A DNA stretch of 64,000 nt from Thalia democratica (Eukaryota), in contig OZ241834.1 of the NCBI GenBank assembly GCA_965202585.1, positions 37,262,001 to 37,326,000 of the forward strand. The letters are read 5' to 3'. Shown here piece after piece: positions 9,046-61,618 of the stretch. The position numbers were made by a program, and so were the translations under genes. Each line of letters starts with the position of its first letter. Position 1 is the stretch's first letter. The notes below the pieces were generated by a model that searched no databases, was not told the DNA's origin, and was given only the letters and a program-made list of their open reading frames with translations.

Positions 9046-9235
9046 AATTATTATTTTTATTAAAATGTGTTAGGATTGCAAATTATTAAATAATTTGTTT
9101 GTAATAAAGCTTTTTTAGTTTTATTATTTTTACAGTGTAACTTTTATTAATGTATTAGAACTTTTTATACTAGATAAAATGTAAATACTAACAATATATT
9201 TACTCAACTTTTTAGGACTTACTATAATCACTACA

Positions 9236-34977: not shown

Positions 34978-37900
34978 GTTGTTTTTATTAAAAAAATAAT
35001 TTTCTTAGTATAAAAGGCTATAAATTTTGTTTAATATTTTATAAATGCATTACAGCTTGCGTTTTATTTTACATAATTTATATATTTGTTGTTAAATTTT
35101 TTAAATTTTTATGTAGACAAAAATTTTTTGTAATTTTTATGCAATTATATGATTATAAATTTTAAAATACCAAAATAATAAACTACTTTAGAAATTAATT
35201 TAGTTGAGTGAGAACGTATTAAGTAGATTAAAGATTAAACTGTTTTAAATATCTTTAAAAATAATATTCTGAGATTGTTTGTTGAGTTTGTTAATATTAA
35301 ATGTATATGTTTGTAGCGGGAAGACCTTCAGGACTGACACCTTCATGTATTCGAAGATTATAAACAACTGTTATAAATATTTTAATAATAATTCAATTAT
35401 TAAACATATTGATGGTAAAAAGTCTGAAAAGTTTATTAGAAAAAATAATTTACAATCACCATGTTATCCACAACACAATCATATTTCAAAACTTTGTGTA
35501 CTCAGCAGTTTTAAGTAACATTTATTATAATTCATCTTATAAATATTCTAGTGGGAAGACGCCACAGGATTAACACCTTCAGCAGGAAATTCAATGAGCT
35601 TGTCATCCGCAATCAAAGATGTTGACAACGCGATCAACCTGTTCTTCAACAATCAGTTTGGTGAGGCCAAGAAACTCTGCGCTGAAAAGTTTGTTTAGAT
35701 TTATTTTTAAAATTAATCAACTTCTACATATTTGTTCTCTGCACTGAAAAGTTTTTGATATGTTAAGTGTAATATATAAGTATTAGTTTAAAAATTGGCA
35801 GCCTTGACCATTGAACAAATGCTATATATTTGTTCCCTGCTCATAAACATTTGTAATATAACAAGTTGATTACATATTATGAGATCAGGGGTTGGCAGCT
35901 TTTTAAAATAAATATTTTTAAATGATTAAAACAGCTTACTTTTGGCTACATTTTTCTAGAAATATATTTTTGGCGACATATTAGTTTATAAGTATTGCTC
36001 TAAAAAACAAAAAAAAAGAAGAAATACAGTAATAAATTAACTTTTGATATTTGAATGTTCCCCCTAGGCCACAGATTGCTGCACTATAAATTCTTCAAAA
36101 GTTGTAAAATCACTTTGTATGATGAATTTTAGAAGAAACACTTTTAGAACATTAATAAGTCCAGAATAATTAACAATATAAGAAAAAAATTGTGAAAAAA
36201 ATAGTAGTTTGAAAATTTATGGTAAAAAAAGTAAGATTTTTGCAATAAAAAAGAATTCTGTCTAAACCAAATAATACAACTAATGCAATTTTGATTATTT
36301 ACTGCATCATTTTAAATAATTATAAATAAACATTTATTATAATTAACCACAGATCATCAACAAGTATTTATCACTCTATTGGAAAATCGACTTTACTTTA
36401 TTTAGAAGCTGTTATGACCTTTGACGCTGTAAGTTTTGATATTTTTACATATTTTTGAATTTTTTTGATTTTGAAATAAAACTGTCATTTGCCATGTATA
36501 TAAAAATTTTTTCACCAGTTTAATGTTGTTAAAACTTAATGATAAAACAAGTTACAATAAAGAAAGTTTTTACCTTACTCGTTCTATAAAATAATACAAA
36601 ATATTTATTATAGTTATCCAAGTATAACAAATTAATTATAGCCTATAGTTTTTTATACTTTTTCAAAGTAATTGATTTAATATAAACAGGTTAAGTAAAA
36701 ACATTTTAATATTTTCACCATATCTTATTATAACTAAAAACAAAGAGCAATATTAAAAATAAGTTGTTATTTATTTAAACTTTATTTGTTTTTTTAATTT
36801 GAAACTTTTTTTTACTAGAAAGACATCGAAGTTGCTATTACAAGTATTAAACAAGGACTCTCACTATGTGAAAAGTTAGTTTTATTTTTTATTAAATTGA
36901 AAGTATTAATAATTTCCACTATATGAAAAAGTTAGTTTTATTTGTAATGTAGTAAAAAAATTTAAAATAATTCACTAAGTAAAAAGTTAGTTTTATTTGT
37001 AATAAAGTAATAAAGTTAAAGAAATAGTCTTCTATAAAACTGATTAAAATATTAGTTGCATTTAAAATTTATGAGCTTCGATAAATAAGCTCAAACATTT
37101 TTTTTTTGTGAATGTTATTTATAAACTTAAACGAACTAATGATTTGTTGTGATTTGTTTGTGATGATACAATGACTACATTTTTTGTCTGATATTTCTTA
37201 AAAATCAATTTTTACTTTTATGCAAAACAGCCCTAATTCTTCTATTGACAGTTTTTGTGTTTTAGTAACAAAGTTGAGGGTTTACCACTAAAACTTAAAC
37301 TTTGACTGCTGATTTTTAGTTTTCTAGTTTCTTAAACTGATAGTATAAATGTAAAAACGAATGTTGGAAAGCATAATTAATTACATTTAATGTTTTTATT
37401 TAAATTAAATTTAAAATTTAAAATAAATTTTTAGTTATAGTTGAAAATACTTAGATCCTTTTGTTTAAACAAAGCTTGGTGTAAAACATTTTTAGATATT
37501 AACTTATACTCTAATTACTAACATAAAACTTAGTTAAACAAAAAAAAATACAGCATGAGAAAAAAGCAGAACTTAGTGGGAAGATTGGTGGGAACCTCTA
37601 CAAACACTTACACTGAAGGTAATTTTTACTTTTAATTTGAAATATATTATTTAAGCATTACCAAAAAAAATAAGCTTCAAGTTAGTATTAAAATGTAATT
37701 ATAATGGTACTTATTTAATGTCCAAGAAAAGTGGAGATAATGGTACCTTTTAGATGTGTTTTTAGAAGTTTTGAAAATAAACATGTTGATAATGCCACAG
37801 TGAGGCTCATTTGAACGTAAAAAAGTTGATTTAAAATTATTACAATTGTATAATCTGTTCTTCTTTATCTAAATCTAATGAACAAAACAAGTTCAAATTT

Positions 37901-40900
37901 ATTTAATTAATGCATAATAGTTTACATTCTCTGAGTTAAAGTTCACAAAATTTAAACTCCAACATTAAAAATAGTTTGTTAAATATATATTTTAATAATT
38001 TTTTAAAAATATTTTTCTGACCTTAACTTTTGTTTATTAAAGATCTGCTAAGTTTTTTGATTGAAAAAAATTCAAATAAGTTATTGAAATATTGCCTTAC
38101 GAAAATCTAATAAGAGTTTGAACTGTTGTAAGTTAAACTGTCTTGTAACTCTATGATACAGTTATTAAGTATTTTTTAATTAAGTTTTATATTTTTTAGA
38201 TGAATTACATGCAGAAGTAATTTATGCCGAACTGAATTTATTCTACGCAATGCTCACTTTTATACAGGTTGTTTAGATTATAATTAAAAAGTTTGTAAAA
38301 ATAATAATTTTATAAAATTGTTTAAGTTACAGTTGTTATTTTAAAGCAGAAGTCAATTAAGTATGTTACGCCTTCGTAATTTTGTTTCAAAATTATATTG
38401 TACACTGTTTTTTAATATTTTACATTACTAGTTTAAAAAACAGTAATTTAGTGCTACTGATTGTAAAAACAATTCAATCAAATAGAAATTTACCACTTTA
38501 ATGCATCTATAATTTAAAACTGCTATTATAAGATGTATTTAAAATAATTTTATAAATGTAAAAAATTAAATAAAAAGCTTAACAAAAAAAGGTACAAAGT
38601 CTACATAATGATAGGTTAATTTTTTAAAAAATAATTTATATTTTTTTTATAGGACGAAAGCGTGATGAATCTTGTAAAAGGAGCGTTGAAGATGAAACAA
38701 GGTTACAACAGCTACAAGAAATGCGAATGTTTGGACCAAGACATGACAAACATGTGTAATAACAAGCACTTCCAAGGAGCCATAAACCTCGGCTGTGGTT
38801 GTTTTAACATTGTTAGTTGTTTTGTTAGTTGAACACAAAGTTGATTAATTAAAGACATTTGTTAAACCAAAACTTTAACAATTGTCTTTAAAAGAACCTA
38901 CAAACATTTTCAAATATTGTTACCTATTGGCTAGGGCTGTTTAAACATTGTTACTTGTTTTAATAATCATAATTAGAAAAAAATAACAAAAAACCAAAAC
39001 TGAAACGTTTATTAAGACTTTGTTTTAATAATTACCTGGAAAATAACTTACAAGTATCTAGCCAATAAAACTTTTAAATGGTTTTTTAAAGTTTACTTTT
39101 TTTAGTGTGAATAAAAAAAAAATTGTCAGAGTATTTCTTAAAAAGAAGTAAAAAAATGTATATTTTCTTTTTGTATGCTAACTATGTAAATGTTTTCTGA
39201 TAAGACAAACCTAATGTTTAAAAAAAAGATTTGGTGAAATTTATTTTAATCTAATTGTCTGCACCCAGTTATTTTCAGTTATACATTCTTGGTTAATATT
39301 TTTTCTTTATATTTGAATAAAAATTGCTATAAACAAGTACATGAATATTTGTTCTATAGGGCATGTAATTTTTACATTATAAAGCAAGGTTCCCTAAAGT
39401 GAACCATTTTGCCACCTTGGGGGCAATTATAGAATTTTAGGGGGCCATAAGCAGCAAAGGGGCTAAAGAGGGGGGCATGAGCAGTAAAGGGGCCCCATGG
39501 GGGCTATGAGGCCATAATTTGAAACTCATACTAGATATTCTGGAGTTGATGGTGAAGAGCAGATAAAAAATAAGGTCCTAGGTATATTTAGGGGACACTA
39601 AATATTGTGGGAAGTCATAAGGTGTAAAAGAGGGAGTCATAAGGCCATAATTTTAAACTTACACCAGATATTCTGAAGTTGACGGTTAAGGGGAAAAAAT
39701 TAAGTGAATTTAGGGGAATTTTTTTGAGAGATATTGTTGGAGGGGGCCATTGCTATTTTTATTTCTTTAAAAGGAGGCTTTAAAAAATAATCTTAGGGAA
39801 ATCCTGTTAAAAAGTCATATCAATAATAAAATTTATATTAAACTTATAATAAAGATAATAAGTAATTTATCTTTTAGGGAATGTCATTACTACCAGCCAG
39901 AGTAGTGGCAATACTGAAGTGGATAGGCTTCGATAGCGACAAGAAAATAGGATTACAACAATTAAGCGATTGTTACCTGAACTCAAACGTGAGGAGTTCG
40001 CTTTCTTCACTGTTCGTACTTGGCTATCACCTGTTCATATGTTCGTTTGTCGGTTAGTTGATGTTGATATTTGTATACTTTTATTTTATTGTCTTCGTTG
40101 TTCGTACTTGGGTGTCACCTTTTCATGGGAACGGGTCACTATTGCACGAGGGGACACTTTTGCACGAAGGGTCACTTTTGCACGAAGGGTCACTTTTGCA
40201 CGAGGGGACACTTTTGCACGAGGGGACACTTTTGCACGAGGGGACACTTTTCACGGCAACCTTTTTCACGCAGGGTCACTTTTGCACGAAGGGTCACTAT
40301 TGCACGAGGGGACACTTTTGCACGAGGGGACACTTTTCACGGCAACCTTTTTCACGCAGGGTCACTTTTGCATAAAGAATGGACTTAAAAAGGTACGCTC
40401 CAACGTTAGTTACGCGTAAAGTACGCACTAAATCTCGAAATAAACAAAATAGAAAGTTTTATGAAGTACTTGACGCGGATACGTACTTGAGGGAGGTGCG
40501 TACCTCTTAAAGTGCTTTCTACAAAAGTGACGCCGTGCACAAGTGACCTTGTGTGCAAAAATGTCCCCTCTTGCCAAAGTGATGCTCGTGTAAAATAGAC
40601 ACCTACCCAGTTGTGGACTCAAAGACTGAAAAAATAATATAATTTTCCAGGAACAGCGGAACTAGAATGCGACGTTGAACTTTGCACGTCGATAGTTGAC
40701 AAAATGCTGAACAAATACCCGAACGGAATTTATTTTCATTTCTTTGCCGGCAGAATTCAACAATTTGTTGGTGATTTCGACAAGGTAAGAATTGAGTGGT
40801 GAAATCTAAAATAAAACATTAAAACTTGTATTCAGCAATTTGTTATAGATTTTGACAAGGCTAGAGAGTTAATTAGAAAAATAAAAAACACCTTATACAG

Positions 40901-43900
40901 TCATTTGGTTGGCGATTTATATAATTGATCATCTTATCATTAACAAAATATTAATTGTTTTTTTGATATGTAATGATATAATAAAAGTAATAAAAATGCA
41001 CAACTTTTAATCACCAGTTCTTTACATTTGATAAAGAAAATTTGAACTTACTTTTACTCACAGCAAAGTTCAGTTAGTAAAATTAAAATGTTTAACACGT
41101 TCGTTCAAATGATTAATCTATTTTAAGTATGACTTATGTCACGAGGTGTTAAGTAAAGTATGAAAAAAAAGTTGCACATTATTGATTAACTTTGCTACTT
41201 TTAAAATCTTTAATTAACTCTTTTATTTTGAGCTTAAGAAGATTTTAAAATAGAGTTTTATGGATATTATTTTTTATTTTAAAGAGTAGTAAAAATACAG
41301 CTAAGACGTTGTTTAAGTTAAGAATCTAAATTTAAATTTAGCAATTTTTTTTAACTAATAATTATATTTATCTTTTATGAATTTTTTAAACTTTGACCTC
41401 TATTTAACTGTAGGTAATGTACAAACAATTTATTTATTCTTATTGTTTTCTGAACTTTTATAATAAATAGTGTCTGTTTTTATTTTTAACAACTGTATAA
41501 TTTTATAAGGTAATTGAGTTTATTTTGAAAGCATAAACAGTTTTTTTTAAAAATGGTTCATTTTCTGTAAGACTAATTAAACTAATTTTAAGTTTTTATT
41601 TTAGGGTTTTTCATAATTTTAAAAATACTAATGAAAAAACATCTATCTAGTACATACTTTTTAAGTTACAAAAATAATGTAATTCACAAATTATTAAGGT
41701 AGAAAGTGATTGAGTATAAGAAATAAAAATATTCCAACATCAAAAATAAGTTAATTATAATTAATTTCTTTTAGCCACAGTTTAAAACGCAAACAGCTTA
41801 AAGTTAAAAAATATGTACTGAAAAGTTTTAAGACCCTTTAAAGTACTTTGAAGCTAAAATGATTTTTTTTTTGTTAAAATGTAATAAAACATTTTAATCA
41901 AGAAATATAATTTTACGTATTAAAGTTTTCAACAAATAGTGTGCATATTGTTTGAATTGTTTATAATTTAAACTTAATCAACTTAAAATCTAAAAGAAAT
42001 TGGATGTTTGCCTTTTAGTAAAATGTTTATGAAAATCAGTTCAAAAATATTTATTTTATTTGATTGAAAAATAACAATTTAAAATAATAAGAAGTTCAGA
42101 CTTTTAATAGAGCCATCGTATGAGTTTGAAAATTAATATATGATGTTGTCTAGACTTGTCTAGTATTATAAAATAAAAAATACTAGTTATATCACAATAT
42201 TATTTCTTCAAACAAGTTATAACTGTGTTTTTATTTTAACTTGTTGAACAATGTTTAAAATAGTATTAAATAGATGTTATTTTTGTCTTATGACAGATAA
42301 CAGTTGTTATAATTTCATAGACTTTTTTTAAGATCATCCATATGATTAATAATATTATCAAAAGCAATAAAAAAGTCTATAAAGTTAAACAATTTAATAA
42401 ATACAATGTTATTTAACAAGTTTTATGCATATTTTCAGGCATTTGAACATCTTAAAAAAGCTTCATTATTACAAAATGAGTCGCAAAATACATTTTAAAA
42501 AAGGCAATAGAACATTTAGAAAAAGTTAAAAAATAAGAAATAAACTTATTTCTATTTTTAGGCAATAGAACATCTTGAAAAAGCTTCCTCCCTTCAAAAT
42601 GAGTGGCAACAGTTTTCACATTTTTGCTACTGGGAACTTATGTGCTGCCACATTTACAAATTACAATACAAAAAAGCTGCGGAATACGCTGAATTACTAG
42701 TGTGAGTTTTTTATCTTAAATAATAAAAATAATTACAAATTGTTAGTGTGAGTTTATAATATTTAATAATAATATATTTTCAAATTACAATACAAAAAAG
42801 CTGCGGAATATGCTGAATTACTAGTGTGAGTTTTTAATATTAAATAATAAAAATAATTACAAATTGTTAGTGTGAGTTTGTAATATTAAATAATGAAATA
42901 TTTACAAATTACAATACAAAAAAGCAGCTGAATATGCTGAATTACTAGTGTCAGTTTTTTATCTTAAATAATAAAAATAATTACAAATTGTTAGTGTGAG
43001 TTTATAATATTTAATAATAATATATTTTCAAATTACAATACAAAAAAGCTGCGGAATATGCTGAATTACTAGTGTGAGTTTTTAATATTAAATAATAAAA
43101 ATAATTACAAATTGTTAGTGTGAGTTTGTAATATTAAATAATGAAATATTTACAAATTACAATACAAAAAAGCAGCTGAATATGCTGAATTACTAGTGTC
43201 AGTTTTTTATCTTAAATAATAAAAATAATTACAAATTGTTAGTGTGAGTTTATAATATTTAATAATAATATATTTTCAAATTACAATACAAAAAAGCTGC
43301 GGAATACGCAGAATTACTAGTGTGAGTTTTTTATCTGAAGTAATAAAAATTACAAATTGTTAGTGTGAGTTTATAATATTTAATAATAAAATATTTACAA
43401 ATTACAATAAAAAAAAGCAGCTGAATATGCTGAATTACTAGTGTGAGTTTTAATATTAAATAATGAAAGTTACAAATTGTCAGTGTGAGTTTATAATATT
43501 TAATAATAAAACATTTACAAATTACAATACAAAAAAGCAGCTGAATATGCAGAATTACTAGTGTGAGTTTTTTATCTTGAATAATAAAAATTACAAATTG
43601 TTAGTGTGAGTTTATAATATTTAATAATAAAATATTTTCAAATTACAATACAAAAAAGCTGCGGAATACGCTGAATTACTAGTGTGAGTTTTTTATCTTG
43701 AATAATAAAAATTACAAATTGTCAGTGTGAGTTTATAATATTTAATAATAAAATATTTACAAATTACAATACAAAAAAGCTGCGGAATACGCTGAATTAC
43801 TAGTGTGAGTTTTAATATTAAATAATGAAAATTACAAATTGTTAGTGTGAGTTTATAATATTTAATAATAAAACATTTACAAATTACAATACAAAAAAGC

Positions 43901-46900
43901 TGCGGAATACGCTGAATTACTAGTGTGAGTTTTAATATTAAATAATGAAAATTACAAATTGTCAGTGTGAGTTTATAATATTTAATAATAAAACATTTAC
44001 AAATTACAATATAAAAAAGCAGCTGAATATGCAGAATTACTAGTGTGAGTTTTAATATTAAATAATAAAAATTACAAATTGTTAGTGTGAGTTTTTAATA
44101 TTTAATAATAAAATATTTACAAATTACAATACAAAAAAGCTGCGGAATACGCTGAATTACTAGTGTGAGTTTTAATATTAAATAATGAAAATTACAAATT
44201 GTCAGTGTGAGTTTATAATATTTAATAATAAAATATTTACAAATTACAATACAAAAAAGCTGCGGAATACGCTGAATTACTAGTGTGAGTTTTAATATTA
44301 AATAATGAAAATTACAAATTGTCAGTGTGAGTTTATAATATTTAATAATAAAATATTTACAAATTACAATACAAAAAAGCTGCGGAATACGCTGAATTAC
44401 TAGTGTGAGTTTTAATATTAAATAATGAAAATTACAAATTGTCAGTGTGAGTTTATAATATTTAATAATAAAACATTTACAAATTACAATACAAAAAAGC
44501 AGCTGAATATGCAGAATTACTAGTGTGAGTTTTTTATCTTGAATAATAAAAATTACAAATTGTTAGTGTGAGTTTATAATATTTAATAATAAAATATTTT
44601 CAAATTACAATATAAAAAAGCAGCTGAATATGCAGAATTACAAGTGTGAGTTTTTTATCTTAAATACGAAAAAAAAATGTTGTTAGTTTTTTATTAAATA
44701 ACAAAATATTTACAAATTACAATACAAAAAAGCAGCTGAATATGCAGAATTACTAGTGTGAGTTTTTTATCTTGAATAATAAAAATTACAAATTGTTAGT
44801 GTGAGTTTATAATATTTAATAATAAAATATTTTCAAATTACAATATAAAAAAGCAGCTGAATATGCAGAATTACAAGTGTGAGTTTTTTATCTTTAATAC
44901 GAAAAAAAAATGTTGTTAGTTTTTTATTAAATAACAAAATATTTACAAGTTACAATACAAAAAAGCAGCAGAGTGTGCTGAATTATTAGTTTGAGATATT
45001 GTATTAAGTAATAAAAAAATAATTATTAGGTTTTATCAAATAACAAGGTATATACATATTACAATATAATAGGCTTCAGAATATGCTAAATTATTAATGT
45101 GATTTTTTAATATTAATTGGTAAAATGTTTACAAATTATTATAATAAGTTTTAAATTAAATAATAAAGTATGGAGCAAATACTTCTACACATAACTTCAA
45201 TAAATAATAGTTAACAGAGTAAGTTTAACAGTAAAAAATGTTAATACATTTATCTTCAATAAATAATAAAAAATTAAATAGATAGTAGTTAATAAAATAA
45301 ATAATAACAGTGAACAATCTAGTTAGAGTAAATGTCTATATACTTATATTAAATAAAAATTAAATGATAAAATAATATATAACAAAATGTATAATAACAG
45401 AGAACAATCTAATTGGAGTAAATGTCTATATACTTATCTTAAATAAATAAAAATTAATGTAATAAATAACAAAATGTATAATAACAGAGAACAATCTAAT
45501 TGGAGTAAATGTCTTTACACTTATCTTCATGCTTGCTTCTTATACGAAAATGACAGAACAGATCCTAGAGTCATGGAGCTAATGTTGTAAGTTTTATTTT
45601 ATATTACTAAAAACTGATTAAAATATAGTTTAAACCAACAAATTTTATGAAGTTTTAGCAAGTTTGCTAGAAAATATGATGTAACTGAATTAGGTAACTT
45701 TGTTAAGTAACAGTAACAGCTTAATTATTTTGATAAAACAAGCTGTTAGAAATAAGTTTAAAATTATGTTAATGTGTTACTTAGTTTTATCGAATATAAA
45801 TAAAACACTATTATTTCTATAAAAAGCACTTAACTATCTTTTCTTTGTTTTTAAAAATAAAATGTTTAATGGTTTATTTTGTGTAAATTATTTTTTAAAA
45901 TTAATCTTAATTTAATACAAAAAACTAACTAAATAAACAGTTAGTACAAAAACTTCAATTATTATTAGATTAATTTAATTGTATGACATTTTAACCAATT
46001 CACACAGTTTTTAATACAAAATTTTTAGTTTTTTTTATGTGTTATACCCTTTATGTAAATAAAATAGTTTTTGTTTATAACATACTTAAATACTAATACT
46101 TATATAAAAATGAAGGTATCTTTACATTAAAAAATTATTTTACATAAAAAAAACTTAAAACTATTTGCTCAATAATTAAAACTAAACAATTATCATTAAG
46201 ATCGGTTCAAGACAAATAGAAGAAATTGTCAGTTTGTTTTTTTTAAATTTTTAACTTAGTATAGAAAATATATACTTTTAGTACAAAATAAATCAATAGA
46301 TAATTTTAAATCAATAATTAACGTTATAACTTCAAATATTTTCAGATCGGTTCAAGGTAAAAAGAAGAAAGTATCTGGAAAATCACTTCCGATTGAGAAG
46401 TTTGTCTGCAGAAAAGCGAGGAAGTTTATCGAGCAAGGCGGGAGATTGGTTGCCCCAACTATGGTTCGTTTAATTAAATATGTAAAATATAATGATAAAA
46501 TAAAAAAATATTATACTAATAATGAAGTTTATCGAGCAAGGCGGGAGATTAGTTGCCCCAACTATGGTTCGTTTAATTAAATATATAAAGTATAATGATA
46601 AAATAAAAAAATGTTATACTAATAATGAAGTTTATCGAGCAAGGCGGGAGATTAGTTGCCCCAACTATGGTTCGTTTAAACTAAACATGTATAATATAAT
46701 AGTATAATATTATAAGTGTATTAATAATAATAAAGTTTATAGAGCAAAGCGATAACTTGTTGCTCCATGGTTTGTTGTTTTTTATTCAATTTAATGTAAA
46801 GTCTTTAACATGATTAGTCATACAATTCATTGTTGTTTGTAGACTTTTCTATAAACAAACTTGTACAAAAGTTCATAAAGTCAAGTAATATGTATAAATT

Positions 46901-49900
46901 TGTTTAGTTTAAGTCAAGAATATATAGTTAATAGTTATACAAGTTTATATTTTTGAATAAACTAATAAAGAAGAAAAAAAAGTTTAAAACTTGATTTTGT
47001 TCATTTCCTTTGTAAATTTACAGTAATCAAACTAAAAGTATCTAATTATACTTACAATAATCAACGTTTATGTTTTTTTAAAAAGTTGTGGTATTAAAAA
47101 AAAATGATTAATTTTTCTGAAGTAAGTGGCTGTTATTAATTACATGTTTAGTCTATTTCCGTAAACTAAAAACATTTTTATAAAATTTCTATTGAAATGT
47201 TAAAATAAGAATAGTTAATTATGGCCCATTAAAAGTAGTTAAAGACTTACGTCTGGCAATAAATCTGTAGTAAATGTCATGAGAATCAAAATTATTTTAT
47301 AAAGCTTATAAATTTTCTACTAACATTAGAGTTAACATCTATATTTAAGTTACTAAAAGGTAAATTGAAATTTTATTGGGTAAAAATTAAAGGGTAAGAA
47401 ATAAGTTTCAAATTAAATAAAAGCTTATTAACGTCACGAATTGAATACATTAATTTTTCATAAAGTCAGATGACTACTGTAAAACACATTAAACGTTTTA
47501 TACTTTAAAATATAAGTTCAAATATATAATTTCAAAAGGGCAGTGTAAAAAAAAATATTTTTTCTCACCTACCAAAAGATGTTTCGCGAAATTTGAACTT
47601 GAATGTGATAAATAAACAGGCAAAAGTAGACAAAATGAATTATTAAAAGTTGTTTATGCTTGCATAATATATAAGTCTTGTAAATTACAAGTAGATTATG
47701 TAAGTTACAAGATACGCATATTGTTCGTTTGCTAGCTATTGCATCTATGGTTTCCCACGAATATCTGTTATGTTTATGTACGCAGTTTTAACTGTTCGAC
47801 ATAATTGGAATTAAATTTGTATTTTCATAAATTTAATTTTGAAATAAAGTTAAATTTTTCCAATTTTTTTATCTATTTTATGAACTTTAAGTATTCTTTA
47901 ACATTGAGTTGTTTATAAAACTTCATAAAATTAAAATTTTCAAATATATATAATTTGAAATTTAAGTTGTATTTTAATTTTTTGTTTTTATTTTTTATTT
48001 TTTAGTTTGTTTTTTATGGATTTTCTTTTGTGAATTAAGTATTTAATTGGTGCTGTGTTTTTATTACTTTGTTTCTTTACTGTATATTTTTATAACAATT
48101 AAATGCTAATTAAACTTACTTTATTGTTTATATATATTGTTACTATTGCAACTTTTTTTAAAATTATTGTGAACGGTTTTTGCATAACTTTAATTATTAA
48201 ATTAGTACACAGTGAATTTAAAGGTTTAATTATATATACAACTTTAATAACAGAAAAACAGTTTTATAATGTGCATTTGAAATTTAAGCTTTAAGTATTA
48301 ACCTTATGGTTGTTTTAACTTAATAAGTTTATTAACTTTTGACCTAAATTTTCTTATCTTCTTTACTTTGTATATCACTTAAAAAGCATTGCTCCTTTTA
48401 AGGAATGACTTACCTAATATAGCTAAATTGAAATTTGATTTTCTTCTTAGAATAATTAAAGATAACTTGAAAAAAATCTTCTGAGTTTAAAAGTACGTTT
48501 TAAGTTCTTCTACATACTTCGACATAAAAAAAACATTATAAAAAAATATAAATGAAATCAAACAAAAAAAAGTTGAGATAAACCATATTTAAGTCTTAGT
48601 TATTTTGAAAATTTTTTTTTTATTATTGATAGTTTTAAAAAATACTTTGTCTCTAATTTACTCAAAAATTAAAAGTATATACCTACTTTTTTGTACAAAA
48701 AGTTGATAAAAGATATCACTTTCTGTATGTTAATTAAAACTTAAAAAAAATCTTTTTTCTTTTGGTAAAATATTAGCCACAAGTCTGCAGACTTAACAAG
48801 TCTTAAGTTTTGGGCAGAGATATCAAAACAAACAAATGCATGTTTATTTTATGCTACTTATAACAACAATGTCGCTACAAAGTTTAATAACCTTTGTGAT
48901 CAACTGTTGATCTTTGACTTTTGTAATAAAGATTAACACTTGATATTTAATCTTTGTTATTATAAAGGTTTAATCTAAAGTTCAACAATTTTGTCAGTAT
49001 TTCTTTAAAGCTGGCTATTTTCTTTTAATTGTACTTTGTTGTTTAAAGTAGTACACGTTAACTTTTAATTAACATTCGATCTTTGAACTTTAGTAGTAAA
49101 AATAACGACTTATTTTTTTCTGTATTATTACTTAGCGTTTCAAAATTTAATTTTTAATACTTTTTAAGTATGATGGATATTTTGAAACATGTTTCTGAAA
49201 CCAACCTTATTAAATACTAATTTAGAAGTTTAAGTTTTTTAATCCAAAATATAAAGAAAACTTATGTTATTGATATAATGTATCTGTAAAAATTTGACCT
49301 ATTGCTTAAAAATTAAAATTTTATTCTTTTTAGTTAGTAAACGAAGTTAATCAAATTTTAGCAAATGTAAGCTATGTAAACTTATTGTTTCAAAATAATT
49401 AAAAAAATTAAGCTTTTTATTAATATTATCTTCATAAGAAGTGCGAGTTTTTACACAATGCTTTAAATTGATTTCATACTTATTTAGTTGTGCTTTATTT
49501 GATTTAGTTTTGAAGAGCAGAATTTATAACTTTTTATAAAAGTCTGCTTAATGTTTAAGTTTTTCCTTTTGTGCATATCTTGAAATTAAGAAAAATATTT
49601 TCCAACTAAACTTTTATTGTGTTCTTAAAAATAATATTTTTTTTCAGTCATTTAAAAAGTACTTAAACATTTTTTTTCAATAAAGCTGAAATTTTTATTA
49701 AATTAAAAAAAACTAATATAATACTACTCCAAGTTATAAGATATATAAATCAAAGTTAAAACAAAAAGATTGAAAACGCTGTTTTATTTTTCATAGAAAC
49801 TTAAAGTATTAAGAAACACTGTTTGTTTAAAATCATGTAATTGCTGTCTGATGATTAATTGTTATAAAGTTAAAAATAGTTTGATTACTACAAAATAAGT

Positions 49901-52900
49901 GTGTGAGTAATTAAATTGAGTTTAATAAGTATTTATCAAATTAAATTTAATTCTACAAAAATTAAAAGAAAACTTAGATGGGTGAAAACCTTAAAAAAAA
50001 ATTAAAGAGTTTGATAAAAAGCAATGAAAAGTTGTCTTTTTTAGTTTGGAGTCAAAATATATTTTCAAATAAATTGAAAAATTCCTACAAATTCAATAGA
50101 ATAAATTATTATTGCCGGGAATTTCTATAGCTTGAAGTATTTTAAAACATTGTATAAATTTACTTTTTAAAACAAGTATTTATAACCTTTTAAATCAGGT
50201 ATCAATCCTGAGAAATGACTAAAATTTTTAAAATAGCATTTTTACATATTTTTTTAGGAATTCATAGCTGTATGGAGCCAGGTATCAATGTTGAAGAATA
50301 ATCAAAATGTTTAAAAAAATGTTAACTTTTTTTTTATAGCAGTGTGCAATCAAGTATCAATGCTGGAAAATAACCTTAATTATAAAAAGATATATATTTA
50401 TTTGTTATTTTTTTCAAGAATTCATAGCTGTATGGAACCAAGTCTCAATGCTGAAAGTTAATTAAAATAAGATTTTCATAATTTTTTTTTTAGGAATTCA
50501 TAGCTGTATGGAATCAAGTCTCAATGCTGAAAAATAACCCTGAATTGAGATTCCAACACTTGACAAAAATTTGCAACGAACTAGATGAGTTAAATGGAAT
50601 AAAAAAAGAACAAAACAAGCATTTGGACAACAGTAAGTTTCAAAATAATAATGTAGATTTTTTTTTTATTTCGAACCAAATAAGCATTTGGACAATAGCA
50701 AGTTTAAAAATATAATTTTCCAAGTGCACAAATACTGTTTTTAGTTTGTAAAAAGGATAAAATTAAGTTCCAATATTACTATAGTTTTAAAGTTGTAAAA
50801 AAAATTATGATAAATCTATAAACAGAATTACTGTTTTCTGTTGTTTTAATTAAAAAACTAGCATATTGTCTTATAGTCATATTTTTACTATGAGTTTCCA
50901 GTCTACTAAATGACAAAACTATAATTTGTTACAAATATACAATTTTCCCACATAGTCTTGGCAAGGCATGAGATTTAAAGGTTTTTTTATTATTTTTAAT
51001 TTATATTAATTTTTACAGACAGATTTACAGAAAAACGTATTTAATTATTTTTAATTTATATTTTTTTACAGATTTAGCAAGACACGACACAGGAAAATGT
51101 TTTTACTACTACGACGATTTCTGTTTATTGGAAAAATTAAAAGGAAATTTAATGGAGGCCGGAGAAAAATATTCGGTCGCTGAAATTTGCTATAATGGTG
51201 TTAAAGAAAAGTTTGTTAATTTATTTTATTACTAATTATAAATATATTCAGTTGCTGAAATTTGTTATAATGGAGTTAAAGAAAAGTTTGAAATTTTTTT
51301 TCAATTAGCTATACATTAACTATTATTAAAAATGAAAAAAAAGTTTAAATTTGTTAGAATGATGTAAATAAAGAATTTATCATTTCTTTTTTTTTAAAGG
51401 TATTGTTAATAATTATCATAAACAAATTTTACTGCTGAAAAGTATATTACAGTACAAACTGGTAAAATATTTAATAAATTTTTATTCAAACTAGGTGAAT
51501 ATTACTTATTGTTAAAAATATATAATACAAACAAATACCTAAATATATGTGATACTGGATCAAAAATCCATAAAAATAAAGTATAATGCTGCCAAATTTA
51601 AATTTATTTTGAATAAAATATACAGATACACTTATAAAATTAAGATTAAAATTAATACTAAGGTTTTATTCAAATTAATGGCTGTTTTATAAAGTTATAA
51701 TAAAAACTCTATTTAGATGAATTTAAATACTTCAGCTTGAAAAATATGAAATTACAACTTTATCAATAGATATATCTACTCTGTTAAAATAAAGTAAATA
51801 AATTTATGAATTAAAATAACGTGACCTTTTTAGTCGTAAAATTGTAAAACATACTGTACTAAATATTTGTTTTTGAACAAACTAATCTGTTTATTGTAGA
51901 ACAAAACATTTGACCTTTAAAAACAACTGATGTATTATTTAGTTTGTTTTTCCGCGTAAAACTTTTTATTGATTTAAAAATATAATTACCTTCCAAAACT
52001 TTAGCTGTCTGTTTTTAGACAAACTAAAAAGTTTGATTAATCAGAATTGATAAGCTTTAATTTGAAAGGGTATTGAAAAAAGAAACTAAAACACAGTTTA
52101 TTTTGTAAAGTTTTATATAAGTTATAAGCTAGGTAATTTTATAAAGTTCATTGCTAGAATAAAACAAAATAAAAAATAATGTAATTGTAATAAACGTATA
52201 TACTTTTTTTAAATGTTTGGGAATTGCTTAAAAAGCTGATAAAAATTATTTTATTATGATAGGTTTAATTTCAACATTCACTTATTATAAAGTTTTTGTT
52301 TTATAATCACTAATATTTGAACAATTTATAATAAAAGTAATATGAATCATTTTAATTTACAGACTTATTTAATTTAACCAGTCTTCAGTTTAGTAAAACA
52401 CAATTAGAATTTTGCTATAGTGTATTAAATGTTTTCAATTTTTTCATTTAAATGAATAAAGTTCAAACTGCAAAAAGCTTATAATTAAAAGAGCAAGTCA
52501 GTTTAATGCGTTTTTATTTAAATGAATAATTCAATCTGTTCAATCAATATTTTTGGCGCTGAATTTTTTAAAATCTTTTCTTCTACAATGAAAGGCAATT
52601 TGTTATTTTGAATGGCTTCTTTTATTCACATCAATGTAAAAAATATTTAAAGTGTTTTGATTAGTTAGTTTAAAATAAAAAACAGTATTTCAAATTAGTT
52701 TTAAAGAATATGGTTTTGAAATATAATAGTTATTAGAAAAAAAATGCTTACTTTGATTTTACTACTGAGTTTAGTTTAATTTGTTTTTAATTTTAAATTA
52801 AATTAGTACATATCATGCTTTGTACATATCACTCCTAATAAAGTCTTATCTAATAAAAAGTCTGATGCCTTCTAATATTTAAATATGATCTGATATTAAA

Positions 52901-55900
52901 ACTACTGTGTGTAAGATTAAACTACTTTTAAAAGTTTTAGAGATATGGTATCACCCATTTATTTTTAAAACCTAGAAATATTCAAATATAAAAGTATATG
53001 TAACAAATTTAACTCACATATTTACTTTTTAAAAACTAAAAATCATCATATATTGTTTTGATTTAGTTAGGTATTTTTTACTTCTCATTGTAACTTATAC
53101 AAGCTTCCCTTTCTATACAAGCTTTTCTGTAGAACATAGTTCATAGTAACAGGAAATCACGATTGTAAAGAAAGTTTCATTTTGTAAAATATTTAAATAT
53201 TAAGTATAAAATTATATTTATCTGTTTTAAATGTTTAAAATTTTTAACACTAAGTAGCTTAACTCATATATTTTAAACTAAACGTTTGTAGTTTAAATTT
53301 ATTGTATATTAAATATTTTTTAGTATAGTTTTAAGTAAATGTTTATATGATTTAAAAAATAATGTTTTAATTTTCGACTTAGGTATTTTATAAGAAACAA
53401 AAATATTTGTAGAAGTAGTTATCAAAACAAAAAATCTATTTATAAAACGACTACAATAGTTTAAGTTTGTCTTTTAGTTTTTCTACTCACACTATCAAAT
53501 TTATCACACATCAATTATTTGAAAGTTATGTAAAAAATTTATATACAATAGTTCTGCTAAATTGCTTAATTTAAGGAGACATACGTATAACACTTAACTT
53601 TTGTTATAGTACGGCCAATATCTGAAGAAAAAATGTTTTTAAAGTTCTATAAATTTTTGAATTTTAGTTTAAATTCAATGCAGTAAATGTATTTTTTATC
53701 AACAAAATCTGTTTTATAGTTTTTAAGTTTTTTAAATTAAACCAAAATTAGATAATCTCTGTGTTATATTGTTCTACAACTATATAGTTTTGATAATTTC
53801 AGCTACAATTATTAAGTATGTCAAAGTTTTAAGTTAAAAATGATAAATAAATAAACATTTTCAGCTACAAATACATAGTAAAAGACCAATATGTAACAAA
53901 TAAATAATAATAACAATTAATAAATTATTTTCCAGTTACAAGTACATTGTGAAAAATCACTATGTAGCTACTAAATACTAATAATAAATTAATTATTTTT
54001 ACTTACAAGTACATTGTGAAAGATCGTTATGTACCGAATAATAATAATAAATTAAATACTTTTCTAGTTACAAGTACATAGTAAAAGATCACTATGTAGC
54101 AATTAAAGAATAATAATTAATTATTTTATAGTTACAAATACATAGTGAAAGATCACTACGTAGCAATTAAATAATAATAAATTAATTATTATATAGTTAC
54201 AAGTACATTGTGAAAAATCGTTATGTAAAAACTTTGTAATAAATTAATTATTTTTAGTTACAAGTACATTGTAAAAGATCACTATGTAGCAATTAAATTA
54301 TAATAAATTAATTATTTTCTAGTTACAAGTACATTGTGAAAGATCATTATGTAAAAACTTAGCAATAAATTAATTATTTTCTAGCTACAAGTACATAGTG
54401 AAAGATCATTATGTAAAACTTTGTAATAAATTAATTATTTTCTAGTTACAAGTACATAGTGAAAGATCACTACGTAGCCGCTTCTGCGATGGCCGATTTG
54501 TCAATGTTGTTGGTGAAACAAGAAAAATTTGAAGAAGCCCAACAAATAGCCAAATACGCAAAGTTTGTTTATCTTTTATATAAAGTTAATTAGTTTATTT
54601 TAATTAGTTTGTATGGGGCTATAATAAAACTAAAGGTATGAAACTAGTTATTTTATACTGTAGATTTAAAAGTACTGTTTTATTCAGTGAAAAATATGGT
54701 TTGTAGCAGGACTTGAGGTTGTAAATTTTAATCCTTCTAAAGTAATACTTATTAATAAACTTTAATTTGTTTTTAGCTATTTAGAGGTCTACCATGACTT
54801 TTTTTTTGTATTTAGAAAAACGAAATTTTTTAATAACTGCATCTGTGATATTACATTTTTTATACATAATTTTTAGTTAAAAATATGGATTAACATTCCA
54901 TAAACTTTTTACAAGTTATTAAACATGAAAAACTTGTTCTAAAAAATATTAAGAAAAACTTGTTTTAAGTTCCTTCATCCAAGTTTTTCATAAAAAATTA
55001 GTCGTTGTATTGAAAAGTTCTGCATAGTTGCGTGATAAAAATCTCTTTTAACTTAAGATTTTTAGTAAAAACTTTTATATTAAAGTTGATTTAAAGATAT
55101 AACTTTGTATTAAAGCTCTTATGAAAAAATGTTCAGAATAACTTGTTTAAATTCTCTCACTAAAGTTTCATAAAATAAGTGTTTAAAAGTTCTGCAGAGA
55201 ATTGGTGTAAAACTTTTAATCACGATTGAATTAGCATTTATTTAAATACCTTTATAAAATGGTTTATTTAAAGGTATAATTTCGTATTAATGCTTTTAGT
55301 GTTATTTTTTTTGTTATTATTTATTAGTATTACACATGAGATATCTGTACTAACCTTTAAAAAAGTTACTATTATTATAATGATCGTGTTAATAAATATA
55401 TATTTTGCTTATTTACATCATAAACCGATATTTTTTTATTGATTTTATGAATTTGCGTTAAAATGTCTCTAATTTATATTGATATCTCATATCTTTTCAT
55501 TTAAAAATTAGCTTATTTGATAAAAATAATTTAAAGTCTAACTATACGTTTGCTAACAGTATTTTAATAATTTTAGTCAAATTTTTAACATTTTATTACA
55601 GTTTCAATAAATCAATCTTGTCATTAAAATCCTTTTTATCTAAATTATTTCTGAATTATATATATTTTTATAAATGTTTACAAAAATTTAAGTAGTTATA
55701 GTTTAAATGTTGTCAGAAAAATTAATTAACATTTTTTTTAGTTAAAGTTTAACTAAACATTGAAAAAATTAATAAGACTATTGTTTTAAATTTTCTCTTA
55801 TTGTCGAACAATTGAATTATTCTTGATTAAACACTGCTATAAACTATGTTATTGTTTATAAAGCACTTTCCTTTTAAATTATACATGTAGAACAAACTCA

Positions 55901-57976
55901 AATTACTTAACTTAAAAATCTATTGAAGTGAATAATTTGTTTTACTAAATATGTTGTTAATCTACAGTTTAGTTTAATAGATTTTAATCTTCTTGAAAGA
56001 AAAATATTAAAAGTAGGAACATTTTGTAATCCGTATTTTGTCAAAATGTATGACATTAATTTGCTTTTTTTCTTAAAATAAGTATATTACTAAAATTGTA
56101 ACATATTTTTATAAGTTATTATTCTGTCTTTAAAAATACAAATATTTAATGGTTGAAAAAATACTTGAGGTGTAATAAAAAGTATTTTTTGCGCTTTAAG
56201 TTATTTACTAAAATCAAAGCTTTTCATCGTAATTTTATTTTATAAAAACCACTTATTACCATGAAGGTCTAAGTATAACATCTTTAAATTAGTAAAAAGA
56301 AAGTCTATTATATTGTTGTAAAATTTAGTAGTGTTTTTTAATGGTAGTTATTTAATCGTATTTTTCATGTTTTTATGTATTTTGTTTGTATTTGTTCGTA
56401 TTAAAAATTAATTGTAATTTAGCCAATAACTATAGTTCAAATCAAGTTTAATAGTAAAAAATATATTGATTTAAAATAAATTCTAAAGTGTTGCCAAGAA
56501 ACCCTTTTATCACAAATTCTCAATAAAATGTTAGAAATAGTTTGTTACCAATTACCTAAATAAAATACAGAGTTAAATAGTTTACGTTTATTAATTACCA
56601 TAAACATGTTTTATATTTAATAAATTACAATTTATGATGTGTGAAACAATGATTTATAGGTATGAACTTATAAAGAAGTAAATCTTTCATTTGGTTTGAA
56701 ATTAAATTAATTGTTTAACAGATAATTGTTTTCGTTTTGTTTAGGTTTTTAAAATTTTAGATTTGTGAATTTTCGAATGTGAGTACAAATTTTTCTCTGG
56801 TTTAAATATCTATAAATGACGAAGGAAATAAATTTTATATATAATTCTCCTTTTTTTTGTTTTAATTAAAAACATGTACTTTGTATAATATTTGCAGTAA
56901 ACAAGGTTTATAAGAGAATATTCCTGGAAGTAAGTTTGTTGAAATTCAATAGACTTTCTTACTACTCATACTGAATAACTCAATTGAAAAGTATATTTTT
57001 AGCTTTTAAAAACAGTTTTTTGATTTTTCTCAATAAAAAAAATATATAACCTATTGCCTTGGTTTTAGCTGAATAATATAATGACCTGTTTTCATTTTTT
57101 TTGATTTGATTCTCTGATTTTTCACTGATTATTTTGAACTTAATGATGTAATAAAGAAATAGTAAAATATAAAAAGTTTTCAAAAAAGTAATAAATTTGT
57201 ATTAGTTACATTATAAAACATATGATTCATAAAAATATGTTAAAACTATCCATTGTTAAAATATATCTGTTTAACAAAAACGTTCTAAAGTATACAAATA
57301 AACTCACAAATTATTTTAAACTTCTTAAGGTGTATTACTTATTTACACAGCTAAATAAATATTTAGTTAATGTAGTAAGAGTTAATTTAACTATTACACA
57401 GAACAACTTAAAAAACTTACTTTAACAATATAACATTTCATTTTTTTCATAGTAGTACTGTTTAATGAGTAAAAATATTACAGTTTTAATTTCCACAAGA
57501 TTAATACACTTAATTTTATCTTTTTAATCAAAGCTTAAAGTACCACATATATTTGAGAAAAATTTTGATTAAAAGCTCTAACAATTTGATAACACATGTC
57601 TACAATCTTGTCTGGAAAATTATATACTTGATAGTTTTATTATATTTATCAATGTTGTAAAACTACTAGAAATTGTAAATGATTACAATTAGTTATTACT
57701 AATGTTGTTTTATAATAAAATTTTTGACCGGATAAAATTAATTAGAGTATAATAGCATTTAATGGAACTTTTTCAAAACAAATTTAAATTGTTAATTTTT
57801 AAATTCTCGATGGAAGCCATTAAACTATTTGTCAAAAGTTTATCAAAGTATTTTGTTTATTTATTTTGATTAATTTTTTTCACAGGAAAAACTATTCCCA
57901 TTACTCGATGGAATCCAGGATTCACTTCCGATTGCACGCAGTGACGTCATACGTTAAAACTGGAAGTAAACAATGA
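34939..57976 (+). CDS. TTC39B: Tetratricopeptide repeat protein 39 (TTC39A/B-like), 16 coding exons, 583 aa
   Basis: Manual splice: 34939-34977, 35552-35688, 36353-36428, 36819-36874, 37554-37618, 38200-38267, 38653-38811, 39878-40052, 40651-40784, 42562-42701, 45488-45586, 46346-46463, 50494-50632, 51072-51210, 54446-54562, 57886-57976. Total 1752 nt, all introns GT-AG, phases consistent. Motifs recalled from TTC39: NLFFNNQF, ELHAEVIYAE, MSLLPARV..LKWIGF, YPNG..F..GRI, FCYWELM, WSKC.Y.Y, GKSLPIEKFV.RKARK, DHY, YSMESRIHFRLH. A versus B orthology cannot be resolved by eye. Confidence 0.93.
35552..35688 (+). CDS. TTC39B: TTC39 exon 2 (WEDATG...NLFFNNQFGEAKKLCAE)
   Basis: ctag| acceptor, aa|gtttgt donor. 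Confidence 0.9.
36353..36428 (+). CDS. TTC39B: TTC39 exon 3 (SSTSIYHSIGKSTLLYLEAVMTFDA)
   Basis: acag| acceptor, |gtaagt donor; resembles SMYHALGYSTI..LQAVLTFE. Confidence 0.92.
36819..36874 (+). CDS. TTC39B: TTC39 exon 4 (KDIEVAITSIKQGLSLCE)
   Basis: ctag| acceptor, |gttagt donor. Confidence 0.88.
36875..37003 (+). repeat. Two echoes of the exon-4 3' end plus donor
   Basis: cactatatgaaaaa|gttagttttattt (~36917) and cactaagtaaaaa|gttagttttattt (~36973). Confidence 0.8.
37554..37618 (+). CDS. TTC39B: TTC39 exon 5 (MRKKQNLVGRLVGTSTNTYTE)
   Basis: acag| acceptor, |gtaatt donor, phases match. Confidence 0.85.
38200..38267 (+). CDS. TTC39B: TTC39 exon 6 (ELHAEVIYAELNLFYAMLTFIQ)
   Basis: ttag| acceptor, cag|gttgtt donor; conserved HAE..YAE motif. 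Confidence 0.93.
38653..38811 (+). CDS. TTC39B: TTC39 exon 7 (DESVMNLVKG...LGCGCFNI)
   Basis: atag| acceptor, |gttagt donor. Confidence 0.92.
39385..39806. mobile_element. hAT-type non-autonomous element
   Basis: TIRs caaggttccctaa / ttagggaaatcctg; near-perfect 8-bp TSD ttataaag / ttaaaaag. Confidence 0.75.
39878..40052 (+). CDS. TTC39B: TTC39 exon 8 (GMSLLPARVVAILKWIGF...ICSFV)
   Basis: ttag| acceptor, |gttagt donor; SLLP..IGF motif. Confidence 0.93.
40127..40608. mobile_element. MITE-like element with subterminal 19-20 bp tandem repeats (gggtcacttttgcacga)
   Basis: The left arm holds ~12 units and the right arm holds reverse-complement units; imperfect GGG...CCC termini; related element at ~30464-30781. 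Confidence 0.75.
40651..40784 (+). CDS. TTC39B: TTC39 exon 9 (TAELECD...YPNGIYFHFFAGRIQQFVGDFDK)
   Basis: ccag| acceptor, |gtaaga donor. Confidence 0.92.
42430..42561 (+). repeat. Two echoes of the acceptor plus exon-10 5' end
   Basis: tcag|gcatttgaacatcttaaaaaagcttca at 42439 and aag|gcaatagaacatttagaaaaag at ~42504. Confidence 0.88.
42562..42701 (+). CDS. TTC39B: TTC39 exon 10 (AIEHLEKA...FCYWELMCC...AEYAELL)
   Basis: ttag| acceptor, |gtgagt donor. Confidence 0.93.
42702..45105 (+). repeat. Tandem array (~120-125 bp unit, ~20 copies) of the TTC39 exon-10 3' end plus donor
   Basis: Unit = ttacaaattacaatacaaaaaagctgcggaatacgctgaattactagt|gtgagt plus intron; exact 120-bp period at 43801, 43921, 44041, 44161, 44281, 44401. 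Confidence 0.97.
45160..45487 (+). repeat. Echoes of the acceptor plus exon-11 5' end (2 clear, 2 degenerate)
   Basis: ataacag|agaacaatctaattggagtaaatgtctatatacttatctt at 45401, a similar copy at 45311, and fainter copies near 45215 and 45165. Confidence 0.88.
45488..45586 (+). CDS. TTC39B: TTC39 exon 11 (EQSNWSKCLYTYLHACFLY...MELM)
   Basis: acag| acceptor, |gtaagt donor. Confidence 0.9.
46346..46463 (+). CDS. TTC39B: TTC39 exon 12 (SVQGKKKKVSGKSLPIEKFVCRKARKF...PTM)
   Basis: tcag| acceptor, |gttcgt donor. Confidence 0.93.
46464..46776 (+). repeat. Three echoes (~103 bp period) of the exon-12 3' end plus donor
   Basis: gaagtttatcgagcaaggcgggagattagttgccccaactatg|gttcgt at 46524 and 46627; degenerate copy at ~46732. 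Confidence 0.93.
50251..50493 (+). repeat. Three or more echoes of the acceptor plus exon-13 5' end
   Basis: Copies at ~50258, ~50331 and ~50418 of gaattcatagctgtatggaatcaagtctcaatgctgaaa. Confidence 0.92.
50494..50632 (+). CDS. TTC39B: TTC39 exon 13 (EFIAVWNQVSML...KHLDN)
   Basis: ttag| acceptor, |gtaagt donor. Confidence 0.9.
51072..51210 (+). CDS. TTC39B: TTC39 exon 14 (LARHD...DDFCLLEKLKG...AEICYNGVKE)
   Basis: acag| acceptor, |gtttgt donor. Confidence 0.9.
53859..54445 (+). repeat. Tandem array (~60-70 bp unit, 9 copies) of the acceptor plus TTC39 exon-15 5' end
   Basis: Repeats of tttctag|ttacaagtacatagtgaaagatcactaygtag directly upstream of the real exon. Confidence 0.95.
54446..54562 (+). 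CDS. TTC39B: TTC39 exon 15 (YKYIVKDHYVAASAMADL...AKYA)
   Basis: ctag| acceptor, |gtttgt donor. Confidence 0.9.
57886..57976 (+). CDS. TTC39B: TTC39 exon 16 (KNYSHYSMESRIHFRLHAVTSYVKTGSKQ*)
   Basis: acag| acceptor, TGA stop; resembles the conserved C-terminal YSLESRLHFRI. Confidence 0.93.
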
Positions 57977-60900: not shown

Positions 60901-61088
60901 TAATTTAGAGTTAGTATTTTTATTGTTTTAATATGTTTAAAGCTAATACTTGAAACTGAATTATATATTAATACACACATATTAATTAACGTATACTTCT
61001 ACATTTTATAATTAATTTTACTTGTTGTAACTAAAAGTATTATAATAACTAGTATATTTATAAATCTATAATACTTAATGAATAACAT

Positions 61089-61161
61089 AACATTATAGCT
61101 TAGTGGTAATAACTCAGAAACAATTAAACCGAAGGTAGTAAGTTCGAGTCCCAGCTATGTT
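61089..61161 (+). pseudogene. tRNA-like relic or tRNA-derived SINE head
   Basis: A-box-like TAGCTTAGTGGTAA, B-box GTTCGAGTCC, followed by a T-run; anticodon arm not paired. Confidence 0.5.
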
Positions 61162-61281
61162 AATTTTTAATACAAGAAACAACATTTGCTCCAAGTTGAA
61201 CAAAGATTTTCTATCTTTAAAAAATTCGTGATGCATTTAATGATACGTAGAAAATATATACAAGTATTTGTCATCATTTTA

Positions 61282-61618
61282 AATAGTTCTCGTAGCCTAG
61301 CGGTTTCAAAGCCGTAGAATCAACTGCGTAGCAGTTGAACAAAGATCGAATCTCATTAGAGGTAATTTGACTGAATAAAACTCAATTAATAAAGCTAGCT
61401 ACGTTAGTTAGATAATTTTTTTAATACTTCACTTGGTAGACTAAAAAAGTACTCTGAAGTGTGCATTTTATTTGTATTTGGACGTGGACCTTGTTGATGT
61501 GCACCACGTTGGATTTGATCTTGCAACCGCTACGCAGTTGCTTCTAAACAACATCCTCAATCGCTTCAACTGCTACGCGGTTAATTTAAAGACTTAACGT
61601 TAGGCTATGTGAACTATT
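61282..61618. mobile_element. MITE with ~21-bp TIRs
   Basis: aatagttctcgtagcctagcg vs cgttaggctatgtgaactatt; inverted subterminal caactgcgtagcagttga motifs. Confidence 0.7.

Follow-up and report, generated by a model that had tools for sequence, protein, structure and literature searches.

Tandem repeats whose units straddle an exon/intron boundary are known from amphioxus as "mirage" minisatellites, with examples in Adh3, troponin C (TnC), the globins BflGb6/BflGb9, and PGBD5 (PMC3087553, PMC3902484). The source for amphioxus mirages is Canestro et al. 2002, as relayed in PMC3087553. Mirage units are 10-160 bp long, span exon and intron, keep AG/GT, and leave splicing normal (PMC3087553, PMC3902484). 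The mechanism behind them is described as unclear (PMC3087553), and length or somatic instability is shown for Adh3. In humans, the 37-bp VNTR of F7 intron 7 starts with a unit lying across the donor of exon 7; splicing uses this first donor and ignores the identical pseudo-donors that follow it (PMC1557585). Intron gain by tandem genomic duplication (the Rogers model; Hellsten 2011 and Gao & Lynch 2009, insofar as PMC3443670 presents them) and tandem exon duplication, including mutually exclusive exons, are the other described systems that invite comparison.

The window analysed here is a stretch of 64,000 nucleotides from Thalia democratica. It contains a TTC39-like gene whose introns carry "echoes", or partial copies of the edges of the neighbouring exons. 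Echoes share with amphioxus mirages their tandem units across the exon/intron boundary, their occurrence at both 5' and 3' ends, the greater divergence of the repeats at the array edge, and a normal mRNA. They are direct head-to-tail repeats of a unit made of exon end, splice site, and intron; AG/GT is kept, and splicing is undisturbed at the three junction pairs seen in transcript-like contigs, which cannot show minor isoforms. Mirages, however, occupy few loci and usually one or two boundaries per gene, whereas the TTC39-like gene has echoes at 15 of its 29 junctions, many of them in old, decayed ladders. The amphioxus genome is also much less AT-rich than the genome described here.

The donor arrays of exons 10 and 12 have the layout of the human F7 repeat. 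At exon 12 a transcript-like contig uses the most upstream donor; at exon 10 the same choice is predicted from the layout. In contrast to the F7 VNTR, which is a single locus affecting donors only, acceptor ladders are as common in the TTC39-like gene, and in these the most downstream AG is the authentic one. The Rogers model likewise involves an internal tandem duplication that copies splice signals and is tolerated since splicing restores the mRNA. There, however, an exonic AGGT segment is duplicated to give a new intron, whereas the TTC39 units contain a pre-existing intron border, and the echoes lie inside existing introns, which they lengthen. Tandem exon duplication also copies exon sequence locally within a gene, but it involves whole exons with both splice sites and a preserved frame; the echoes are partial exon ends with one splice site, and they contain stops at a neutral rate.

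The first-pass annotation of this DNA knew of no prior description of such repeats, although they had been described, as mirages in amphioxus (PMC3087553, PMC3902484) and as the F7 IVS7 VNTR in humans (PMC1557585). The kind itself is therefore already known; what is new is the density of echoes, the taxon, and an intron complement of which 24% is junction-derived. No genome-wide or non-amphioxus description of mirages was found in open-access full texts.

The TTC39-like gene and its transcripts

The gene was rebuilt on the + strand at 35552-57976 as 15 exons (exons 2-16) with AG/GT borders throughout; joined, they give an uninterrupted open frame of 570 aa with a stop at its end. Exons 2-6 lie at 35552-35688, 36353-36428, 36819-36874, 37554-37618, and 38200-38267. 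Exons 7-11 follow at 38653-38811, 39878-40052, 40651-40784, 42562-42701, and 45488-45586, and exons 12-16 at 46346-46463, 50494-50632, 51072-51210, 54446-54562, and 57886-57976 (the last with the stop). Exons 7-12 give collinear matches to Pfam PF10300 (Iml2/TTC39) over profile positions 110-399, and the family assignment is also backed by an atlas search; the exon 8 peptide, used as a query in a protein search, gave no match. GC content is about 23% in the window and about 20% in the TTC39 introns, which are rich in AATAAA-like sequence.

Three sequencing runs bear on the locus. Runs X1 and X2 are short-read DNA from one sample, probably the assembled individual; run X3 behaves like RNA and comes from another sample. 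An 803-nt contig of run X3 (record 18) aligns to 45488-45584, 46346-46462, and 50493-50576, that is, to exons 11, 12, and 13 joined at the borders of the model, and a second contig from this run gives an exact cover of exon 14. The authentic splice sites of exons 11, 12, and 13 are thus used past nearby decoys at three junction pairs, in contigs that drop rare isoforms. The exon 12 donor in particular is used despite three GT-bearing copies downstream that are 98, 98, and 75% identical to it. This RNA check took in exons 11-13 and 14. Decoy sites may be used at a low level, which is compatible with the contig data since contigs drop rare isoforms.

The locus is highly polymorphic. Exon 12 of the transcript-like contig differs from the window (46346-46463) at 6 of 117 bases and exon 14 (51072-51210) at 10 of 139, both in the other sample; in the DNA runs, a second haplotype is 7-9% different over stretches of intron 12.

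Anatomy of the echoes

Each junction was represented by a probe of 35 nt of exon and 10 nt of intron, which was aligned to at most 800 nt of the adjacent intron and compared with 300 shuffles. A significant same-strand copy of the exon edge is present in the adjacent intron at 15 of 29 junctions, in 11 of 15 exons, so the exon-edge copies that the first-pass annotation had picked out by eye are real, and alignment places them within a few bases of where it had put them. The outcome is bimodal: 15 junctions score z 5.1-31.9 and are equalled by none of their 300 shuffles, and the remaining 14 score z ≤2.2. Nine echo families derive from donors (exons 2, 4, 7, 8, 9, 10, 12, 13, and 14) and six from acceptors (exons 2, 10, 11, 12, 13, and 15), so that both 5' and 3' exon boundaries are affected. 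Long exons are favoured, with echoes at 14 of 21 junctions of exons of at least 99 nt vs 1 of 8 junctions of exons shorter than 80 nt (p = 0.014).

Every echo is a direct repeat that sits on the intron side of its junction and shares the strand of the exon. Each consists of 13-58 nt of exon edge, usually the splice dinucleotide, and then some tens of bases of intron. Periods range from about 55 to 241 nt; TRF recognises head-to-tail arrays whose periods are 55-120 nt. Each ladder has the authentic junction as its end unit: the real donor lies upstream of all its copies, the real acceptor downstream of all of its own. In 8 of 8 multi-copy families, the copy farthest from the exon ranks with the most diverged. 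GT or AG is retained in most copies. About 24% of the intron DNA of the gene is recognisably junction-derived; the TTC39 introns hold dozens of silent decoy splice sites, and the net effect is intron growth.

All features that follow are on the + strand. The exon 2 acceptor echo (35311-35345; 83% identity, z 10.5) runs from intron -6 to exon +29 with its AG kept, 241 nt upstream; in the DNA between it and the exon, homology is no longer recognisable. The donor of exon 2 is echoed within 35712-35902 by a copy at 35737-35761 with GT kept (88%, z 5.8) and a decayed copy about 98 nt further on, the pair 35712-35805 and 35810-35902 being 68% identical. Exon 4 has two donor echoes (36896-36942 and 36950-36997) with the last 37-38 nt of the exon plus GT, a period of 55, and identities of 87% and 81% (z 5.9). 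A donor echo of exon 7, overlooked in the first-pass annotation, lies at 38900-38961 and contains GT preceded by the last 49 nt of the exon (62 nt aligned at 69% identity, z 9.1). The exon 8 echo (40092-40126; 86%, z 5.1) covers exon positions -48 to -14, without the junction part, and adjoins a foldback-type element. At exon 9, the last 29 nt recur at 40830-40865 with GT changed to GC (81%, z 9.1).

Exon 10 carries the largest array. Its two acceptor echoes (42430-42486 and 42502-42525) extend to +47 and +21 of the exon with AG kept (82% and 92%; z 12.3). The donor array (42702-45120) contains 20 units of about 120 nt (TRF period 120, 19.6 copies, 91% matches), each made of the last 49 nt of exon 10, a GTGAGT donor, and about 70 nt of intron, with an inner 46-nt donor sub-repeat. 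The 20 major copies fall within 42776-45109, and their identities range from 82 to 100%, the distal ones being the most diverged. Two types of unit are present, which encode the same amino acids and differ only in silent codon positions.

Four acceptor echoes of exon 11 (45159-45440; z 17) contain its first 39-41 nt at a period of 88-90, with identities that fall from 96 through 88 and 74 to 72% with distance from the exon. Exon 12 has one acceptor echo (46188-46230) with its first 29 nt and AG kept (81%, z 8.7), and three donor echoes (46524-46780) of 98, 98, and 75% identity at a period of 103 (z 31.9; TRF score 507), the unit being the last 42 nt, GT, and about 60 nt of intron. Exon 13 has four acceptor echoes (50178-50474) of its first 43-58 nt at a period of about 80 (74-89%, z 20.5) and a donor echo (50673-50709) of its last 24 nt with GT changed to GC (86%, z 9.3). 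The two donor echoes of exon 14 (51240-51296 and 51347-51385; z 16.4) hold its last 45 and 27 nt at a period of 75 with 89% and 72% identity; the nearest one carries alternative alleles of exon positions 51175 and 51199, which are seen in other contigs. Nine acceptor echoes precede exon 15 (53857-54415; period 65-70, 84-96%, z 21.1, TRF score 640-703). Their unit is about 33 nt of intron, AG, and the first 30-34 nt of the exon, and AG is kept in eight of the nine.

Two fainter copies proposed in the first-pass annotation fared less well. The one near exon 16 (~57803-57825) is not significant (z 2.2, matched by 12 of 300 shuffles), and the one upstream of exon 14 is borderline, as it is a duplication of 55 nt of intron with hardly any exon sequence in it.

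In a genome this heterozygous, echoes might arise from mis-joined haplotypes or from repeats collapsed or expanded during assembly. The locus is indeed very polymorphic, and copy numbers such as the 20 units of exon 10 are those given by the assembly; de Bruijn contigs of the sequencing runs break off within the arrays. The copies, however, do not look like haplotype duplications: they have diverged (69-98%) and are the size of exon parts. Short-read DNA contigs of runs X1 and X2 (one sample, probably the assembled individual) cover the exon 13 ladder (50156-50557) with 0 differences, which argues that the echoes are not an assembly artefact, and such an origin is highly improbable.

Junction excess and background DNA

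The first-pass annotation had reported no obvious tandem arrays in mid-intron or intergenic DNA and had proposed comparing exon edges and their flanks with random intronic probes. Run on this gene, that comparison bears it out: against the 15 of 29 junctions, 45-mers of plain intron score z≥5 in 28 of 1064 cases, or in 9 of 1012 when two transposon-like GC islands are set aside (0.9-2.6%), and 45-mers from the rest of the window do so in 10 of 1562 (0.6%). The odds ratio of junctions to controls is 40-119 (p 3e-15 to 7e-20). Among the six TRF arrays scoring >150 in the 64 kb, five span a TTC39 junction and the exception lies inside the foldback element (p = 1e-6, rising to 2.5e-3 if junction arrays are granted a survival advantage of 6-fold). 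Planted duplicates at 10, 20, and 30% divergence are detected in 100%, 89%, and 47% of cases in plain intron and in 100%, 97%, and 72% when of junction type, so that detection is almost equal up to 20% divergence.

Part of this excess is survivorship, since selection holds one partner of each junction pair constant and sequence of exon origin decays more slowly than intron of 10% GC. In all five echo arrays tested, the half that comes from the exon has been preserved better than the AT-rich half that comes from the intron (identities 0.93/0.885, 0.90/0.79, 0.75/0.58, 0.74/0.68, and 0.79/0.67), and gaps are 2-6 times rarer in it. The intron half alone reveals only 3 of the 15 families (the exon 10 donor, exon 12 donor, and exon 15 acceptor), and isolated echoes occur without any flanking homology.

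These observations favour the reading that duplications are born uniformly along the gene, with no mutational bias, and that junction-spanning ones merely stay visible for longer. The numbers make survivorship on its own an unlikely account. Uniform birth needs a 16-23-fold longer detectable life for junction copies, whereas the differences in decay suggest about 4-6-fold. When the 5-7 purely intronic families are scaled up about 5-fold, a conservative correction, junction families are still about 3-fold over-represented (p = 3.9e-4); with a 6-fold detectability advantage, the family test gives p = 0.02 on small counts (15 vs 7 families). In four arrays the AT-rich half is young enough for its repetition to be visible, and three of these four span a junction (p = 0.007); the approximately 42 kb of non-genic DNA in the window contains no comparable array.

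The junction bias is real but far below the naive 40-fold, and its size depends on how much extra detectable life exon-anchored copies enjoy. As part of the explanation that we consider probable as a whole, the excess combines survivorship with a residual bias in birth or amplification of at least about 3-fold. The first-pass annotation had offered a process that duplicates exon edges and the selective survival of junction-spanning duplications as alternatives; the evidence points to both, the bias of about 3-fold being what remains after correction for survivorship. Its example of an edge-duplicating process was recombination that starts in conserved exon sequence and resolves in divergent intron, with which the high polymorphism of the locus is compatible.

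Several candidate causes of the echoes were rejected. Hairpins do not distinguish the affected junctions, as the folding z-scores of 90-nt junction segments show no difference with or without echoes (p = 0.53). Snap-back templated insertion is ruled out, there being no inverted echo for any junction searched in the TTC39-like gene. GC-richness alone does not suffice, as GC-rich probes elsewhere in the window give local repeats in only about 1% of tests. Decayed whole-exon duplication is contradicted at exons 2 and 12, the rest of which is undetectable beside their upstream echoes. No microhomology or breakpoint motif could be defined at the unit borders in the decayed arrays. Only at the exon 15 acceptor is a strong hairpin predicted (z -2.7); the start of this exon (54449-54478) has a 10-bp inverted repeat with a 4-nt spacer, in which the real exon shows a single mismatch and most echo units show none.

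Other repeats and elements in the window

Mid-intron duplications exist but are rare and faint, as indicated by two weak, purely intronic local duplications in introns 15 (54923-55250) and 12 (48899-49100), with z 5-8.5. One of the few other non-junction repeats in the gene is in a GC-rich island of intron 7 (39422-39700), probably a transposon fragment, where 39499-39566 is directly duplicated at 39632-39699 with 78% identity. Upstream of the gene model, 32819-32966 contains a direct pair with a 103-nt offset and 78% identity whose first copy ends in a donor-like GTAAGG; this pair could echo the junction of an exon that is missing from the model, such as exon 1 of TTC39 or an exon in the UTR.

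Within intron 8, 40127-40640 is occupied by a foldback- or MITE-like element. It has arrays of an 18-nt unit at 40133-40377 with the reverse complement at 40522-40600, its inverted arms being 40136-40266 and 40522-40600. The 18-mer array 40133-40377, considered as a derivative of exon 8, was instead assigned to this element. A diverged relative is found at 30470-30780, 10 kb upstream. Inverted repeat pairs typical of small DNA transposons occur at 23609-24292 (94% over 108 nt, about 470 nt apart), 61054-61861 (67% over about 300 nt), and 17873-18114 (a 248-nt palindrome). The four tandem ORFs recorded in the first-pass annotation are present at 7998-10148, the GC-richest part of the window; they are intronless, 83-124 aa long, and membrane-like, and they account for the local repeats at 9.2-10.4 kb.

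Coding signal and sequence exchange

The echoes are non-coding, with stops and amino-acid changes at neutral frequency. Among the distinct differences between echo and exon, 13 create stops (9.9 are expected) and 76 are non-silent. An apparent coding signature is nevertheless present: 44% of the distinct differences are silent vs 20% expected, and the third, first, and second codon positions are hit in the ratio 79:45:36. Selection at the protein level on alternative or mutually exclusive coding exon ends would produce such a silent excess. The stop-creating and non-silent changes speak against it, however, as do the short span of the echoes (13-58 nt of an exon) and the use of authentic sites only in the transcript contig. 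The silent excess itself arises because drift in an echo is unrestricted, whereas in the real exon it is limited to silent sites; it is close to the prediction for such drift, and two of the sites are segregating exon alleles. Of all the readings weighed here, selected coding ends are the least credible, with a negligible chance of being correct.

Direct signs of this silent drift are the synonymous unit types of exon 10 and the exon 14 echo alleles at 51175 and 51199. The exon copy under selection has passed sequence on to the array more than once: the synonymous units and the echo alleles indicate that exon versions of different ages, or different alleles, were copied or converted into the ladders. 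To judge from their silent-codon differences, the exon 10 units were copied on separate occasions.

A function for the echoes themselves has also to be weighed. Decoy donors might recruit U1 against premature polyadenylation in AT-rich introns, or copies of exon edges might act as splicing enhancers for exon definition. The retention of GT or AG in most echoes, the better conservation of exon-derived than intron-derived halves, and introns of about 20% GC with abundant AATAAA-like sequence would all suit such roles. Yet the older echoes keep GT/AG at about 11-12 of 17 sites (a hand tally), which is near the expectation for about 80% identity; the ladders decay steadily with distance; acceptor copies have no obvious benefit and a plausible cost; and half of the junctions have no echo. 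A functional role is accordingly very improbable.

Origin and wider significance

The echoes are probably "mirage"-type minisatellites, formed by the duplication of junction-straddling segments in direct tandem. The first duplication would arise by replication slippage or unequal exchange. Once present, an echo could serve as a misaligned partner for the real junction, promoting unequal exchange between sisters or homologues and gene conversion, and these processes would expand, contract, and refresh the ladder. Versions that disturb the exon would be purged by selection, leaving copies confined to the intron side. Splicing would stay accurate because no site but the authentic one adjoins the remainder of its exon, as may be compared with the human F7 intron-7 repeat.

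More tentatively, and with the balance of probability somewhat against it, a genome-wide process may preferentially duplicate exon-intron junctions, for example through nucleosome-positioned exons or through repair between highly divergent haplotypes. The exon-length dependence and the high polymorphism of the locus fit these nucleosome-linked or divergent-haplotype repair ideas. Two cautions apply to echo findings in this genome: the apparent junction specificity can be due in large part to survivorship, and the apparent coding signature can be due entirely to silent drift in the real exon.

If such a genome-wide process operates, "mirage" formation would be among the main forces behind intron growth and would keep supplying new splice sites, and the TTC39-like gene, with its 15 junctions, its exon-length dependence, and the silent differences of exon 10, would be one of its clearest displays. 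The TTC39 echoes make several questions testable: the origin of junction-spanning duplications, their share in intron expansion and in the birth of new introns or exons, and the way in which the spliceosome passes over dozens of near-identical decoys beside the real site.
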